From: Piromyces finnis finn
Lineage: Eukaryota; Fungi; Neocallimastigomycota
Assembly: GCA_002104945.1 (NCBI GenBank)
Contig: MCFH01000019.1
Span: 310,001-374,000 of the forward strand
Direction: 5' to 3'
Length of the DNA stretch: 64,000 nucleotides
In this document: positions 3,502 to 56,496 of the stretch, in pieces
How positions within the stretch are numbered: position 1 is the first letter of the stretch
How the letters are laid out: each line of letters begins with the position of its first letter
Notes under the pieces: generated by a model
Database searches by the model: none
What the model was told of the DNA's origin: nothing
Seen by the model: only the letters and a program-made list of their open reading frames with translations
Translations under genes and position numbers: made by a program

Positions 3502-5295
<1,794 letters not shown>

Positions 5296-31264: not shown

Positions 31265-31507
31265 TTATTAAAGGTGTTTTCTTTATTCTTCATTTTTTAT
31301 ATTTATTTATTTATATTTGTTCCTTGCTCAATAAAAAAATTAACTGTATCTTTACTTTCGCCGTCACTATTTCTAATTAAAATTGAAGTGCATTAGTTGT
31401 TATTTCACTTTTTTTTTTTTACTAAAAATATTATTATACATTTATAAATTAATTTTTATTTTTTGTATTAACAATTAATTATTTTAATTGTTAATATTTA
31501 TATACTG

Positions 31508-31509
<2 letters not shown>

Positions 31510-31539
<30 letters not shown>

Positions 31540-32061
31540 CTTCCATATATCCTCATCTAACCCCCTGAGTTATATATGGTATGTGATTGTACATTATTGT
31601 ACATTGCCATATCAGAACGACGTCGGCACAATCATCCCTCTGGGCAGGGCTAATATGGAATGGCTTATTGCTCTTAACGATCCTATCACACAAAGACCGA
31701 GCTACCAACACCAGTGATCTCCTGAACCTTTATTGGCGAAGGATGATTAACGATGAGAACAACCCTCAAAGACCATAGTTAGTAATCTGTGAATTAATTG
31801 ATACCCCTTCCTACATATACTCTAAACTTCAGTGGGAAAACCGCTTGATACGGAGAAAACTACCAATCTGAATTAACTGCTTAGGGTAGAGTCCGGTGGT
31901 ATAGTTATACTTACCTGAATTGACCTTTAACCCCTATACTTTAAGCGCAAACCTGAAACAGAAAAATCACTAAAGAACTGTCAATTGCGGGGGTCGAACC
32001 AGAAGCCTTATGAATGCTAAGCGGGGGTCTTAACAACCAGGATAGAAACTGGAACTACAAC
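31510..32061 (-). mobile_element. SINE-like non-autonomous retroposon A (about 525 nt plus poly(A))
   Basis: Poly(T) on + at about 31508-31536. 12-bp TSD TTATATACTGTT at 31498-31509 and 32062-32073. GC-rich, no long ORF. Its head is homologous to element B. Confidence 0.85.
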
Positions 32062-32305
32062 TTATATACTGTTAGTGTAGTAGGTTTTGTCAAAGTTTAT
32101 TAATATGATTTAGGATAAAGAACTATTTTTACTATTATTATTACTACATTCATTATAAACTACATATATTTATTGTGGCTTCAATATACAATCTAACACA
32201 ATTCATGTATATACGTTTCAATACATTTGTCATACGTTTCACATATTTTACAAATAATCAATGGACATAGAAACTAACAATTAAATAGAATTATAATATT
32301 ATATA

Positions 32306-32837
32306 GTCGTTCCAGTTTTTATCCTGGTTGTTAAGGCGTTTCCTTAGCATACATAAGGCTTCTGGTTCGACCCCGCAGATGTCAGTGCCTGTGGATTTTC
32401 CCACTGGGTTTGCCATGGGTTGGGTTATGATATTCAGGTAAGTATAAATGAACTTTCTAATTTACTACTATGATAATAACACTCGTCTAGCCGGCCTGAG
32501 AGGGTCTAGTATACATGGTACATTCCAAATTAGAACTTAATAAGTGGTGACTTAGGCTATGCCAAAAACACATAATATTCCTTAATCAATTTAAGTGTAA
32601 ACATTAGGGGGCGGTTGACACGTGATCAAATTGACTATAAGAGGCTTAGCATTGTAGTTGTGAAATATCGTACAACGACATGCATCTAATGTACATGGAT
32701 TAAGTGAGCGTCGAAGCTGAAGAAACAGTATGACAGACCAGGAGGGTCACAACCACCTAGCAATAGGAATGAGCCAACGTTTCTCTAAGAACCACCATTG
32801 GAGCTAACTCTGATCGATGGGAGAAATGCACTCGGAA

Positions 32838-32890
<53 letters not shown>
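32306..32890 (+). mobile_element. SINE-like non-autonomous retroposon B (535 nt plus 50-nt poly(A))
   Basis: 13-bp TSD ATAATATTATATA at 32293-32305 and 32891-32903. B-box-like GGTTCGACCCC at 32364. 39/44 identity (32706-32749) to the LINE 3' end (55907-55950). Confidence 0.88.
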
Positions 32891-32893
<3 letters not shown>

Positions 32894-33095
32894 ATATTAT
32901 ATAATATTATATTATAATTATATATTTGTATATAATTTTGATATTTAAATCTCAAACAAAGATGAAGAGCTAGTTTTTTTTTTCTTTAAATATTAAAAAG
33001 ATATTTTAATAGTAATAGCATTGAAATTATTATAATTTTGATAAATTATAATAATAATAATAACAATAATATCAATAGATAATAGATAAATTAAC

Positions 33096-41851: not shown

Positions 41852-42579
41852 GTAAAAGGGAATTATGAAAAGAAAGAAAGAAAGAAAGAAAAAAAAAGCC
41901 ATCTATGTTTTTTTTTTAATAGAAATTTTTAATAGATGTAAAATAAAATAACATCTTATAAATAATATTATATATATATATATTTTTTTTTAATAATAAT
42001 TTTATTTAAAAATATACCAAAAAAAAAAAAAAAAAAAAAATAAAAGTCTTGCAAAAAAAAAAAAAAAAAAAAGAATCTTTTAAACTTTATTTTTTCTCCT
42101 TTATATATTATTTTTGTTCCATTATTATTTATGTAGTTTTTTTTTTTAACTTTTTATCAAAATATATAAATTTGTTATCAGCATTTATACAATTAATAGT
42201 AGTCTAATCTACAAGAAGTATTATAACTAAATAATGTATTATTTATATACAATTTTAATTTTATTATTATTATTAGTATATATTAGTATAAATGGAAATA
42301 GTTATCAGAGGATAAACAATTCAATATTGGTATTTAGAGAGTGTGTCAATCCACCAATTTTTTTTTTTTTTTTTTTTTAATACATCTACCACTTAACTAT
42401 TTTTTAATTATATATAATTTTAACTTAATTTTTTTTTCTAAAATTTTATTTTAAAAAATTTACTACAGCTACAAATAATTTTATTTAAAAAGTTTCTGTA
42501 AAAAAAAAAAAAAAAGGATTTAATAATAATACTTATATACAAGATTTATACTTTTATAAATACGAAATAATAAAAAAAA

Positions 42580-44210
<1,631 letters not shown>

Positions 44211-45652: not shown

Positions 45653-46214
45653 ATGGAAAACGAAAACGTAAATAATTTTCAAGAAGAAGAAGAATACATT
45701 AACCAAGATGAAATTGCTGAAGTTATCGATCCAGAAGAATTAGAAGGTTAATAACCATAATAAGAAATATATATTGAAAAAAATAAATGTTCGATTTAGT
45801 TATATATAAATGTATACAAATATATATATATTCATTTATAAAAAGTATATATATGAATGAAAAAAAAAATAAATAAAATTATTAAGTAGGAAATTTTTTA
45901 AAAAAAGTATAATTATAATATATATAATTATTATTACAACAATAAAAGTAACAACAACAATAACAATAATAATAACGACAATAACAAATCAAATAAAGAA
46001 AAGCAAATTAAAAATTCTTAATATATTAATAAACTTTTTTAATAATTAAAATGTAGGTGTTGATGAAGATGTTGAAATGGAAACTGAAGAAGATGACGAA
46101 GAAGTTGTTGAAAATGATTCTGAAGTTAGATTCACTAAACATACTGGTAATAAATAATAAATAATTATTAATTTAATTAGTTTATATATAATAATATATA
46201 ATATATAGTTGCTA

Positions 46215-46276
<62 letters not shown>

Positions 46277-50057: not shown

Positions 50058-50687
50058 ATTTGATTAACAATAAGAATAATGAACAAACTAAATTGAAAAA
50101 AAACCTTGATCAAGAGAAAAAAAGAAGTGATAGAATTATCAATGCAATATTTTTTTGATGATAATTACATTGATAATTTAATAATAAAATAAAAACTAAA
50201 CAAAAAAGTAAAATAAGTAAAGAAAGAAAAAAAAAATTTATTATAAATTTATAAGAAATAACTTTTATAAATTTATATTTAAAAAAAAATGCAATTATAG
50301 AAAATTAAAAAAGTAAAAAAAAATAAATAAAAATAAAATAGAAAAAAAAATTAATCTAGTGTATTTTCGTGGATTATTAATTTTGTTATTTTATATATTT
50401 ATATATCATTAATTAAAATTTAGCTGTTCCTTTTTTTTTAAAAAGTGAGATAATTACTAATAATAGTAATTATCTATATGTTTGGAATATTTAATTGAAA
50501 TTAATATTGCCATAGCAATGCATATATCGATATCAGTATCAATATCGAAAAATTCGTGCCATTCCTCTCCATGATCAAGGATCTTTCGAAAATAGTTTTG
50601 TAATTTTTTTTTTTTTTTTTTTTTTTAAAAAAATAATTTTTTATTTTATAGGAATGAAATCAAATCGAATATGGAATGGAAAGAGAA

Positions 50688-50843
50688 AAAATTTACTACA
50701 GCTACAAATAATTTTATTTAAAAAGTTTCTGTAAAAAAAAAAAAAGGATTTAATAATAATACTTATATACAAGATTTATACTTTTATAAATACGAAATAA
50801 TAAAAAAAAATGTTTTTATTAACAGGAACTTCGTCTATTCAAA
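50688..50843 (+). other. Captured copy of the SIW14 5' region (about 42455-42613)
   Basis: Near-identical to 42455-42613 apart from A-run length. Confidence 0.95.
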
Positions 50844-51259
50844 ACACCATTCTTGACGGTAACCGCGGAACTTCTAACCAAAATCATGCCTTTTGCTATT
50901 GGCCAGCAATGGTCAATGTTCAAAAGGTTTGAAGCAACATCCAAGAGCGTCAATGCTGAAGAAACAGTAAGACAGGCCAGGAGGGCCAGCGCAACCAATG
51001 GAGATCATAATTTTGTTCCATGACAAAATTTTGATCTTTGGCTCGGTGTCCCATTGGAAGTCAAATACAATTATTATACTTTAGTATGATAGTGGCTTTC
51101 TTACTTTAATTAAAATTACTAGAATACATTATACCCAATTTTTATTCATTTGTGTTTATTTAAACATATTTTTTTTTATTTTTATTTTATTTTAATTTTT
51201 ATATTACATGTATTATAATTTTAATTAAATTAATAATAAAGTTTAAAATATTTGATGCC

Positions 51260-51305
<46 letters not shown>
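50844..51305 (+). mobile_element. 5'-truncated copy of the same LINE (3' ~415 nt plus poly(A)) nested in the captured exon
   Basis: Matches 55805-56216 with one substitution in the coding part and a T-run difference. About 33-35 nt of the SIW14 copy (42614-42648) is missing at the site; no TSD. Confidence 0.95.
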
Positions 51306-51307
<2 letters not shown>

Positions 51308-51427
51308 AATAGAAGAGTTAATTCCAATGGAGAATTTTAGTATGATTTGTAAAGGTGTGTATAGAGGAGCATTTCCAAAAAAGAAAAACTTTCCTTTTTT
51401 AAAAAAACTTGGTTTAAGAAGTATATT
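51306..51427 (+). other. Captured copy of the rest of SIW14 exon 1 (42649-42770)
   Basis: 122 nt with 2 substitutions; ends at AGTATATT, exactly where the GTAAGT intron starts in the host gene. Confidence 0.95.
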
Positions 51428-51470
51428 TATTTATTTTATATTCAATATTTTTTAATTAGAATTAATTATC

Positions 51471-54400
51471 ATGTCAGTCCTTTATATTAAAGATAAGAAT
51501 TATATCAGACGTGGTACCCGGTCTTATGGTATCCCCTTAGATGATATTCGCTCCTTCTTTATCCGTGGTATTCGATCATGGTCAGTAAATATGCTATGGG
51601 AAAAACTCGAGGTTATTCTAGAAGATAAATTTAATTCAGTTATTAGTGTTAAATATTTTCAGACTTTCAATGATCACTTTTTCTTAGTCAAGGTTCATGG
51701 TTCATCGAAAGATTGTGTTAAAATCTTACACATGTTAAAGAAGAAACTTTCAGTTACCTCAATTTCCTTTTCAGCTCGTAGTAGAAGGAATCACAAATAC
51801 ACTTTTTCCACACTCAAACGTAAAATTTTAGTTTCTAATAAACATCAACTTTCAATTCAACAATCAGTTCAACAATCAGTTCAACAATCTCATCAACAAT
51901 CCGATCTTCAACAAGATCTTCAACAAGATCTTCAACAAGTTTCCCATCATGAAAATATTCCAGATCTACAGCAAACACAATTTCAATCTCAACATTCAAC
52001 AATTAATTCTAATAGCTCTATCAACTCTGCTAACAGTTCAATAGTTGATAGTTCTTCAGTTTCACAGCCATCTAGTAATAGTTCTACTTATTCCTCTGAT
52101 GCATCATCCATTAATAACGATGACTTTAATAATAATAATAATAGCAACGATTCTTCCTCATCCAACAAGCCTGATAACTTTTCTTTTTGTCTTAGTTGGA
52201 ACACCAATGGGTGGAATCACGAAAAGAGAGATAGTATTAGCTATTTCACAGCTATTTTCAAACCATTATTCTTATGTTTCCAAGAAACTGGTAATGGTTC
52301 TGGTTCGAATACAGATTATCCTTGTCGTGTTACTTTGCGAAACTATAGACACTTTTTCAAGAAAGCTGACGAATCAGTTCCGGGAATGAGAGGTTTATAT
52401 TTAGGTTTTCACAATTCGTGTCAAGCCTCACTTGAAAACTTCTCTGGAAAGTATATTATTTCTATTTATACTTTTAGTCTTTGGAATAGATTCAAATGCT
52501 CGATTGGAAATGTTTATATGTCTCATAGTCATCACAACATCTATGTTGATCATGCAAAGTTAGAAGTTCGCTTGTGGTTACAAACTCATTCATCCCATCC
52601 ATCGATTCTTGTTGATGATTTTAATATGTCTAAAGTAAAATTATCCAACTGGTTATCAACTAATGGATTAGGAGATTGGGAAATTCTTCCGCTTAGAGAG
52701 TCGACTATCTCTTGGACTCGAGGTGATCAATCTTCCGACATTGACCATGCTCTTATCAATTCGAAGATGAAAGATCTTATTCACTCAGGATCATTTATAA
52801 ATAATTTTTATCCTGTATCAGACCATAAGCCACTTCTTATTAATGGTAAAATTATTCCTATGGAAGATTTTTCTAATGACTTTAATGTTCCTAAGAAAAT
52901 TCTGAAATGGAATAGATTAAAATGTATTGAGGAAAAGGAATCTATTCTCAGTCATAATAAATTCCAAATACTTTCAGCAAAATTCAACGATCCTAATGTT
53001 TCTACAGATGAACTTTCCAAAGAGTTTACTTCAACTGCTTTTTCAATTGCAGACGAGCTCAGTATTACCTCAGCAAATAATGTTATAAAGTCTTCATTTC
53101 ATATTTCACAACAAATTTTTAATCTTCAAAAAATCAAAATGAAGTTGTATAAGAGATTTAAAAAAGAAAGAATTTATGATATAGATGAATTTATTAAAAG
53201 AATTAAAATCTACCGTAAGCTCATTGATTACATCCACAAAAGATGTAATGAATTTAGGAAACAAGAATATCTTCATTGGATTAAAACAGGATGTGAGTAT
53301 ATGAAGAGTCATAATCCTAAGAAGGCCTGGAAATGGATCAAGAAAACTGCAAAAATAGGAAAAGATTCTTTCTTTATTGCTCAACCAATTAAAAATAAAA
53401 ATGGAGAATTAGTTGTTGCTACAGAAGAACAACTAGAAGTGTGGCATGATCATTTCGAAAAGCTTGCATCAGATCCAAGTGGTGTAAGTCTTGATTTGGA
53501 GCATTGGTATGAAGAACCAATGAATAAACGTTTTTCACTTCCTATGCTTGATGAGTGGGATATCAACCAAGATATTAGTATTGATGAAGTCAAGTCAGCT
53601 ATCCTCTCTACTCCAAATTATAAAGCATCAGGTCCGGATGGTATTCCAATTGAATTTTACAAAGCATTAATTCCATCAAGTAATGATTCTAATAATGCTA
53701 CAGATAATAATTCTTCCGGTAATACCACTTCAGATAATGATGCTCATGGTTTAAATTTTATTCTTAAATTATTCAACCGTATTTGGGATGGAGACTTCCC
53801 CAACTCATGGAATGAATCCAGTATTGTTTCTATTCCTAAGAAGGGAGATTTGACAGATTGTGATAACTATCGAGGTATATCACTTATCAATAATGGCATT
53901 AAGTTGATTTCCAAAATTGTCACCACTAGAATCTCAGAAAATGGTCTAAAGAATAATTTCATTAGACCTGAACAATTTGGTTTTCGAAAAAAGGAAGAAA
54001 GTATCAGTCTTTTCATTTCAATCCAAGAAATATGCCGTAGACGTCAATTAGATAATAAAGAGACATATTTGGCCTTTTTAGATCTCAGGAAAGCATACGA
54101 TTCAGTCCCAATCGGTAATATTCTCCATAAATTAGATTGTTTAGGAATCCGAGGTAAGAGTTTACAATTTATCAAAAATTTATATTTAACATCTAAGGCT
54201 AATGTCAAATTAGATGGACAATTCTCGAAATCTTTTGATGTGAAGAAAGGAGTCCGTCAAGGATGCCCTCTTTCTCCTATTCTCTTTAATCTCTTTATTA
54301 ATGATATATTTAAAGAGTGCGAAGATCTAGGAGTCAGTTTAGGTGACACTCGATGCTGTGGTGGACTTTTTGCAGATGATATAGTTATTTGTGCTCCAAC

Positions 54401-55985
54401 AAGAGGATGCTTAAAAAAGATGCTAAGAAGAGTTAATGAATGGGCCTTGTATAATGAAATGGAATTTGGTATCCAGAAGTGTTCAACGATGGTGATTCGT
54501 CCTGAATCAATAGAAAATCAGAACAAGAGAGATCCAACATTTTACTTAGCAGGACAACCCATTCCAACTACTGATTGCTATACTTATCTTGGTGTTCCAT
54601 TTGATAAGAATCTGTCCCTTAAACCAGTAATTAAAGCTCTTAATAACAAGGTTTTGAAAGGACTTTTTTCAGTCAGTAAATTCTTAAGAAATCCTAATAT
54701 TCCTATTCCCTTCAAAAAGCTAGTACTTAACTCACAAGTGATTAGCAGAGTTTCATACTTTGCACCATTACTTGGATCCAACAAAGCCAGGTCTAGGATT
54801 GCTCAGAAGCATGTTAACAAAGGAATACGATGGGTTGCCGGAGTTCATAAAGCTGTATCGTTTATATCTTTATACTCTATCTCAAAAGATTTGAATATTC
54901 CTCCATTGTCAGCCAAATGTGCGTTAGCTCAGGTTAGATGTTTTAACAAATGGAAAAACTCAAATTGTATTATCTCATACCTTGTCAATTACATTCCTAA
55001 ATTTAGAAAATACACGTGGTGCAAATCAAGTAGGACACTTGATAAAAAATTAAAGAAACATGGAGATGTTAAAGCAGTTAAAAACTTTTATTGGAAAGAT
55101 CTCAAAGGAAATTCAATCAAAGCGCAATATTATGATGATAATAAATTTATTGAAACTAAAGATTTTATCAAATTATGTTATGAGTACCCAGAGTTTGCCT
55201 ATGGCTTCTACTGGCTCTTGAAAGCAAGAAGCGGATACAAGTTGGATGCTAGAGTTGCCAAAGCTGCTAAATTTGTTGATCCAGTTTGTCCTAACTACTG
55301 TCCATGTTGCAAGTGTGGAGATCAAAGTATTAAACATTGGTTATTAGATTGTCCAACATTTAGAGATATCCGTATTAAACATTATGAATCCATAGTCCAG
55401 CTACTAAATTTTTTCAGTCAACGTAATTCCAATAGTCCTATCAATAATAATGAAAATGTTAATATCAGTAGAGATAGCAATAACATTAATAGTAATAGTA
55501 ACAATAGTAGTAATAACAATAGTAGTAATAGAAATAGTAATAATAACAATAGTAGTAATAGAAATAATAATATTAGTAATGATAACAATAGTGAAGATAA
55601 TAATTCTAATTTAGATAGTAATTTAGTTAATGATAGTAATAGTTCTAATAATCCGGTGAATATTAATGTGTATGATTATTCTAGTGTGTGCAGTAAAATA
55701 TTTAAATTCCTTCTTGGGGGAAGAAGTTTTAACAATATTAATTACAATTCAAGGGAATGGAAAGAACTTTGTAAGCGTCAGATTCAATCTGGTACTAATG
55801 AAGGAACACCATTCTTGACGGTAACCGCGGAACTTCTAACCAAAATCATGCCTTTTGCTATTGGCCAGCAATGGACAATGTTCAAAAGGTTTGAAGCAAC
55901 ATCCAAGAGCGTCAATGCTGAAGAAACAGTAAGACAGGCCAGGAGGGCCAGCGCAACCAATGGAGATCATAATTTTGTTCCATGA
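51471..55985 (+). mobile_element. Non-LTR retrotransposon (LINE), single 1504-aa ORF: putative RRM-like N-terminus, APE endonuclease, reverse transcriptase and CCHC knuckle; 3' UTR and poly(A) extend to 56253
   Basis: APE motifs SWNTNG, FQET, DDFN, IDH and SDHKP. RT motifs GPDGIP, NYRGISL, QFGFR, DLRKAYDSV, GVRQGCPLSP, FADD and YTYLG. CPCC..H..C near the C-terminus. Clade not determined (RTE-like single-ORF layout). Confidence 0.95.
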
Positions 55986-56213
55986 CAAAATTTTGATCTT
56001 TGGCTCGGTGTCCCATTGGAAGTCAAATACAATTATTATACTTTAGTATGATAGTGGCTTTCTTACTTTAATTAAAATTACTAGAATACATTATACCCAA
56101 TTTTTATTCATTTGTGTTTATTTAAACATATTTTTTTTTTTATATTTAATTTTTTTATTACATGTATTATAATTTTAATTAAATTAATAATAAAGTTTAA
56201 AATATTTGATGCC

Positions 56214-56256
<43 letters not shown>

Positions 56257-56496
56257 AATCGAATATGGAATGGAAAGAGAAGAAAGGTTGTCTTTTCGAA
56301 GCATTTCCTGTAGTATTCAATAGATTGATTTATAATTAATTATTTATAGTTAAAAAAAAAATTATATATTTTCTATTCATTTTTTTTAACGACAAGAATT
56401 TTTTGATATTGATATATACATTGATATATTTTTATTCAACATTTTCATAATTTGAATATTTAATCATTAATATTATAAAAAATATAGTATATTAAA

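Follow-up and report, generated by a model that had tools for sequence, protein, structure and literature searches.

Piromyces finnis carries, in the 64,000-nucleotide stretch analyzed here (positions 310,001 to 374,000 of contig MCFH01000019.1; hereafter, the window, G000:C101:310001-374000 in the 56,455,805-base, 232-contig assembly that was searched), two poly(A)-tailed insertions on opposite strands, elements A and B, which lie head to head with their 5' ends 244 bp apart. The locus raises the question of what these two elements are, what moved them, and how they came to share one end while differing in the rest. An earlier reading of the letters by eye, made without database searches (the sequence-only reading), had taken them for retroposons resembling short interspersed elements (SINEs), with a shared, structured head and swapped bodies. 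Comparison with the genome, for which 109 loci were fetched, showed that both elements result from recent target-primed reverse transcription of non-coding RNA and are SINEs. It is very probable that they represent two independent insertions of two related SINE families in the AT-rich genome of an anaerobic gut fungus, mobilized by a long interspersed element (LINE) and joined by a common 5' module.

The two insertions and their families

Each element has its own target site duplication (TSD) and its own poly(A) tail (Table 1), which confirms the coordinates of two separate insertions. The TSD of A in the window measures 10 bp (or up to 12 bp when two T residues hidden in the tail are counted) and that of B 12 bp (13 bp with the preceding A). 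Without their tails the elements are 525 to 535 nt long, and both end in GGAAGT(C)T before the poly(A), as had been seen by eye. The G+C content of the window is ~20% throughout, and the two elements stand out as GC-richer islands (42% G+C). Stop-free stretches in A and B reach at most 52 to 63 codons, so that both are non-coding. The A copy in the window has a private 5' end, GTTGTAG, where its family has GTCG, and the B copy differs from its family consensus at a single base.

Unambiguous TSDs of 9 to 16 bp were found in 72 copies (mode, 12 to 13 bp for B and 13 to 14 bp for A), and T stood at position -1, with A next, in 64 of these 72 (T/A sites). Full-length copies share their start base (GTCGTTCCAG...), 5' truncation is frequent, with truncated copies beginning at positions 13 to 68 and beyond, and the tails are pure A (5 to 130 nt). 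A defined 5' end, truncations, poly(A), and TSDs at T/A sites together indicate that a LINE with an endonuclease carried out target-primed reverse transcription. Short and non-coding, and dispersed in copies with TSDs and an A-rich 3' end, the elements are SINEs; the SINE-like character that had been claimed from the window (non-coding, ~530 nt, TSD flanked, and poly(A) tailed) thus stands, both elements being multi-copy and an active L1-like LINE lying alongside.

Both families are repeated in the genome. With the full sequence of B, no fewer than 40 sites of ~100% identity were found (from 884 first-look candidates), and its last 26 nt gave 292 matches at ≤2 mismatches (reversed control, 0). 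Copies of A numbered 23 at 97 to 100% identity (22 besides the one in the window, 97 to 99% identical to it and each in its own flank), with an older layer at 71 to 88%; the last 28 nt of A gave 32 matches (intact 3' ends), and every one of the 43 first-look candidates in a DNA search with the A tail only was a copy of A. Family A totals ~40 copies, of which ~25 are young and the others 71 to 93% identical, and B is about sevenfold more abundant. A 21-mer from the shared head had 235 matches in the genome (control, 0) and no exact match in public metagenomes. Because A and B are multi-copy, the objection that each might be a single-copy element, which the sequence-only reading had raised against itself, fails. 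Among 70 sampled B copies, 45 were identical to the family consensus (mean divergence, 0.31%), and young A copies diverged by 0.62%. With hundreds of copies, most of the sampled ones identical to the consensus, family B looks to be active at present.

Family B contains at least two minor subfamilies marked in the head (loci L064, L065, L070, and L080; L071, L073, L083, L089, and L093). One carries a loop T>G together with C>T, by which G-C pairing becomes G-U at one place in the inner hairpin; the other is marked by CATACAT>CATATAT. Two further loci, L086 and L087 (G000:C101:687262-688482 and 704101-705321), hold one B copy twice, 17 kb apart; their private substitutions and flanks are identical, which indicates a segmental duplication that included the SINE.

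The head-to-head arrangement looks like coincidence. For ~330 copies of A and B spread over 56 Mb, the probability of finding at least one A with a B no more than 300 bp away anywhere in the genome is roughly 10%, and we therefore take the adjacency as a chance pairing, helped by a common preference for AT-rich spacer.

The shared head extends further than had been seen by eye. In local alignment, positions 1 to 90 of A and B scored 110 against 19 ± 3.9 for shuffles (z = 23), and positions 90 to 180 scored 42 against 18.4 ± 3.5 (z = 6.7). Homology spans positions 1 to ~170 and is closed by a 16-nt block, ATTCAGGTAAGTATAA, identical in both elements. Beyond this the bodies are unrelated (z = -0.2 for positions 180 to 330 and 1.8 from 330 to the end), in keeping with the earlier statement that they could not be aligned. 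The proposal of a modular family holds as far as a common 5' module with unrelated bodies is concerned. As 40 heads outside the A and B hit lists, fetched in contig order, were all (40/40) copies of B, the head/body combinations found number only two. Neither a third family on this head nor a stand-alone, head-only gene was found among these 40 sampled heads, and the G39 variant was itself a B copy.

One B copy bears on how such modules may be exchanged. In locus L061 (G000:C150:542346-542659, minus strand; L061:1847-2160) the first 110 nt of B are repeated in tandem three times, and the repeat junctions lie exactly at the 5'-terminal G of B. The junctions suggest that the reverse transcriptase (RT) jumped between templates at the RNA 5' end, and this triplication makes body exchange by template switching plausible.

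The probable partner LINE and the 3' tails

The likely driver is an L1-like LINE, of which the window holds a 5'-truncated copy. More than 110 copies in the genome are 96 to 98% identical over the last 361 aa, many of them with an open frame of ~1513 aa, and APE endonuclease and RT domains were detected. The closest solved relative is human L1 ORF2p (E = 2e-32, versus 4e-18 for R2). A full copy of the LINE (locus L106) is flanked by a TSD of 11 to 12 bp.

Positions 401 to 544 of B align with this LINE from its last codons to the first ~45 nt of its 3' untranslated region (3'UTR), with a score of 79 against 32 ± 5 for shuffles (maximum, 45), and blastn aligned the B tail with window positions 55907 to 55959 at 85% identity over 53 nt. 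The alignments show that the last ~145 nt of B, as judged from sequence similarity, derive from the end of the LINE open reading frame (ORF) and the start of its 3'UTR. Within this piece lies a module of two hairpins common to B and the LINE; in the second stem, the LINE (GGCC/GGCC) and B (GACC/GGTC) differ by one compensatory pair. The poly(A) of B begins where the LINE reads GGAAGTCAAATACAA; since the LINE continues for ~200 AT-rich bases beyond this point, what was copied lies within the LINE in its present form and is not its terminus.

A partner LINE is thereby identified for B, whereas A has in common with this LINE only TSD length, target site, and, at the 3' end, the terminal octamer TGGAAGTC. 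The Smith-Waterman score of the 3' half of A against the LINE was at the shuffle mean, and two genome pattern searches with 3 mismatches allowed, together with the tail-only search, returned only SINE A copies and no LINE source for the A tail. Weak A matches beside ORFs (loci L103 and L104) were rejected as LINE tails; they are old truncated SINE copies next to host genes.

In the mechanism that we propose, the shared module would contain an internal promoter for the transcription of SINE RNA, most likely by RNA polymerase III (Pol III) through the B-box-like GGTTCGACCCC, and the module may have been kept because it carries this promoter. The LINE ORF protein would capture B RNA through the borrowed hairpin module and the A tail, and for A RNA it would probably use no more than the A tail and the terminal TGGAAGTC; it would then nick AT-rich DNA and copy the SINE RNA into the genome. 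Bodies and tails would be exchanged, probably by RT template switching. Transcription by Pol III is favored by the B-box-like motif, the small number of T runs, and, in B, the lack of a poly(A) signal.

Several observations weigh against this scheme. The B-box-like motif (+58 to +68) was read from the sequence, and no convincing A box accompanies it; a T5 run at positions 11 to 15 of B and T4 runs in both families could terminate Pol III; and for the hairpin module there is just one compensatory pair. Element A has no detectable LINE counterpart to its tail, its capture being deduced only from TSD length, target site, and the terminal octamer, and A could be driven by another LINE. A second, less abundant lineage with a 1478-aa ORF (G000:C20:23042-23671, C2:1114291-1114920, C68:780272-780901, and others) matches APE with 49 bits, versus 31 bits for the abundant LINE.

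The LINE copy in the window forms part of a 5.6-kb composite (50661 to 56282) with a 28-nt direct repeat at ~50661 and 56254. Two segments within a phosphatase-like gene (window positions 42453 to 42613 and 42625 to 42770) have duplicates at 50686 to 50843 and 51282 to 51427; a 457-nt LINE 3' fragment with A43 lies between the duplicated halves, and the 5'-truncated LINE (51428 to 56253) follows directly. The composite looks as if LINE-mediated template switching, or else 5' transduction, had come first and a second insertion later. Elsewhere in the genome, RVT_1 gave 1499 first-look candidates, the best 150 of which had compact 161-codon RT matches in open frames of 1250 to 1570 aa; these 150 are probably long terminal repeat (LTR) elements (Ty3/gypsy-like), distinct from the LINE. 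A microsatellite with a 3-nt period is common to window positions 4201 to 4302 and 46159 to 46274.

Table 1. Positions in the window of elements A and B, their parts, and the L1-like LINE
Feature	Positions	Strand	Remarks
Element A TSD, copy at poly(A) side	31498-31507		TTATATACTG, repeated at 32062-32071
Element A poly(A) tail	31508-31536	-	T29 on plus strand, A29 on element strand
Element A body, smaller SINE family	31537-32061	-	Multi-copy, non-coding, 42% GC
5' module shared with B, in A (A positions 1 to ~172)	31890-32061	-	Homology with positions 1-170 of B
Consensus 5' splice-site motif TTCAGGTAAGTATAA in A	31905-31919	-	Identical in B; end of shared module
Element A TSD, copy at 5' end	32062-32071		TTATATACTG
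Element B TSD, 5' copy	32294-32305		TAATATTATATA, repeated at 32892-32903
Element B body, large, very young SINE family	32306-32840	+	292 intact 3' ends in genome
Head unit of B (110 nt)	32306-32415	+	In tandem three times in B copy L061; folds better than shuffles
B-box-like motif GGTTCGACCCC, candidate Pol III promoter element	32363-32373	+	Read from sequence; within the 21-mer with 235 matches
Consensus 5' splice-site motif in B, end of shared module	32433-32447	+	19/20 bases as in LINE 5'UTR
LINE-derived tail of B	32705-32848	+	Alignment to LINE ORF end and first ~45 nt of 3'UTR
Two-hairpin module common to B and LINE	32706-32755	+	Same two hairpins in both RNA folds
Element B poly(A) tail	32841-32891	+	A51
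Element B TSD, 3' copy	32892-32903		TAATATTATATA
L1-like LINE copy, 5' truncated, likely driver	51428-56253	+	Open 1509-aa frame with RVT_1

Origin of the shared head and its splice-donor motif

The head had found no match by eye to a tRNA, 5S, 7SL, or small nuclear RNA (snRNA), and the model searches agree. With Rfam, the window gave no match to these or other families at gathering score; at E ≤ 10, nothing relevant was found in the 1.4-kb element region, and the isolated B head and consensus A head (106 to 130 nt) gave no tRNA (RF00005), 5S, 7SL, or snRNA. ARAGORN at default settings found no tRNA in the window or in the 109 loci, and at a 60% threshold it returned only inconsistent pseudo-folds for the heads. 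The head is thus not recognizable as a tRNA, as in SINE2, and does not match 7SL, 5S, or U1/U2 snRNA, as in SINE1, SINE3, or SINEU. An ordinary, recognizable tRNA head, which the sequence-only reading had allowed for as an argument against itself, is not what is there.

The claim that the head is structured was not demonstrated. The 110-nt head of B folds better than shuffles (z = -3.1), and in an alternative fold the 5' end and the "B box" base-pair (GUCG..CCAG with CUGG..CGAC) to form a terminal stem of 4+4 bp around a hairpin, the loop of which varies between the families in sequence and length while its arms are constant. The proposed stems are invariant: 96% of cells pair, with 0 compensatory pairs and hence no covariation.

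Descent of the head from an eroded tRNA-Ala-AGC-like SINE2 head, with A and B boxes for Pol III transcription, is plausible, and we give it about even chances. When GGTTCGACC is taken as T-arm anchor, the 3' half falls, by eye, into exact class-I tRNA spacing, with a 7-nt loop TTAGCAT (Y32, U33, AGC, A37), then 5+5+5 nt, AGG at 44 to 46, Y48, and a T arm with G53 T54 T55 C56 G57 A58 and C61. In A, moreover, acceptor pairing is possible between the 5' GTCGTT and ATTGAC, with an unpaired A next. The stretch GCTTAGCAT...AGG...GGTTC.A..CCC also resembles tRNA-Ala(AGC) genes. The 5' half, however, lacks U8, A14, a D stem, and the 5' strand of an anticodon stem and is 7 nt too long, and neither Rfam at E ≤ 10 nor ARAGORN gave a usable match. 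Among genome patterns for the 3' half of tRNA-Ala(AGC), one gave nothing and the others only mutated SINE heads; in the genome scan with RF00005, only 63 of 2914 candidates were scored.

That the head instead represents an undescribed cellular small RNA, or a promoter module that arose de novo, outside the tRNA, 5S, 7SL, and snRNA families, is possible but unlikely. This would agree with the lack of any Rfam family at E ≤ 10, with the terminal stem and hairpin of variable loop and fixed arms, and with a module that reaches 170 nt and has a conserved splice-donor end, which is not known from any tRNA head. The tRNA-like register of the 3' half argues against it, as do the lack of covariation in the stems and of a head-only gene among the 40 heads sampled outside the A list.

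The block that closes the module, ATTCAGGTAAGTATAA, has the textbook form of a 5' splice site and is complementary to the 5' end of U1 snRNA. The 5'UTR of the full-length LINE carries GTTTGATATTCAGGTAAGT, which equals B at 19/20 positions (z about 4 to 5, a value inflated by the generic splice-donor consensus) and has 12 nt of the motif in common with A. No spliced SINE copies were seen, and internal deletions in A copies lie elsewhere than at the motif. We regard the block as a conserved element. It could belong to a new type of SINE head, not a decayed tRNA, in which a small-RNA-like promoter domain is joined to a strictly conserved U1-type motif also present in the LINE 5'UTR, LINE and SINEs alike depending on binding of the U1 small nuclear ribonucleoprotein (snRNP); we consider this quite unlikely. 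If true, U1 snRNP dependence might, for example, avoid premature cleavage and polyadenylation in a genome of 80% A+T, or it might serve nuclear retention.

The 5'UTR of the full-length LINE, ~870 nt long (L105:171-1045 and L106:112-992), has two tandem monomers of ~124 nt (L105 174-299 and 301-422). It contains a consensus 5' splice site (L105 ~540-560) and, directly before the ATG, a T-rich tract and TAG; the full-length LINE could thus have a 5'UTR intron.

The motif also enters into the proposal that A and B are internally deleted LINE derivatives, transcribed by RNA polymerase II (Pol II) and composed of a 5'UTR piece and a 3' piece, which we hold to be improbable. It would account for the LINE ORF-end module and the 19/20 match to the LINE 5'UTR in B and for the 12 nt of splice motif and terminal TGGAAGTC that A shares with the LINE. 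However, in neither orientation did positions 1 to 110 of A and B resemble the full-length LINE significantly (z = 0.4 to 3.2), agreement of the B-box region with the LINE 5'UTR at 20/24 positions was within the shuffle range, the bodies (180 to 400) had no LINE match, and the 5'UTR match of B is mostly generic splice-donor consensus. An AATAAA at position 325 of A would, moreover, truncate a Pol II transcript. A deletion derivative should be collinear with the LINE at both ends, whereas the SINE 3' end is internal to the LINE.

Hardly credible is the further possibility that A and B are processed pseudogenes (retrocopies) of two cellular transcripts, non-coding or unspliced, with a common first exon, since, although the shared part stops exactly at a consensus splice donor, like exon 1 before different introns, the 292 and ~40 near-identical copies, with subfamilies and ongoing activity, far exceed retrocopy numbers, the intron-like bases next to the donor are kept in all copies, and spliced variants were not seen.

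Comparison with known SINEs

The reading that we favor is one of two LINE-mobilized SINE families with a common 5' module. SINEs with a tRNA-derived head and a LINE-derived tail (SINE2, "stringent" pairs) are found in animals, plants, and a few fungi (the SINEs of Magnaporthe and Fusarium). The Piromyces elements resemble them in the tripartite arrangement of head, unrelated body, and LINE-copied tail (in B), in TSDs, 5' truncation, and a B-box-like motif, and in the occurrence of several families with one head and a different body or tail. They differ in that the head is not recognized by tRNA models, in that the LINE segment copied by B is the ORF end, ~290 nt upstream of the LINE poly(A), and not the extreme 3' end, and in that family A is without a detectable LINE-derived tail. 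Bivalve SINEs are reported to rely on multiple LINE partners (PMC11481361).

With Alu and B1, which depend on the poly(A) tail for mobilization by L1 ("relaxed" pairs), the families have in common an L1-like driver with APE and RT, long pure A tails, T/A target sites, and TSDs of at least 12 bp. Family A could depend on its A tail alone. In contrast to Alu and B1, the head is not derived from 7SL, the elements are monomeric and ~530 nt long, and B adds LINE hairpins.

Heads of non-tRNA origin are described for SINEU and other SINEs (Kojima 2015, PMC4494074). The present head, not obviously tRNA, 5S, or 7SL and joined to a LINE-type tail, is similar in this respect. It differs in having no U1/U2 snRNA match, its sole U1-related feature being the sense-strand splice-donor motif complementary to U1.

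Chimeras formed by RT template switching, such as U6/L1 chimeric retrocopies, are known. The triplication at the RNA 5' end in L061 and the modular exchange of heads and bodies resemble them, both looking like RT jumps at the 5' end of a template; the partner in L061, of which there is a single example, differs in being a further RNA copy of this same SINE.

The literature searched, which did not cover Repbase, contained no account of SINEs in anaerobic gut fungi (Neocallimastigomycota). A and B seem to represent two undescribed SINE families of a known kind, the design of head, body, and LINE tail being well known elsewhere. In these biotechnologically used fungi, young B insertions may matter as insertional variation between isolates, as strain markers, and as confounders of gene models. 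The two families also provide a clean natural comparison, in which the head is common to both and a single active L1-like LINE is present, but the hairpin module of the LINE occurs in B, sevenfold more abundant, and not in A. This contrast bears on what a SINE gains from a borrowed LINE "handle" over a bare A tail.

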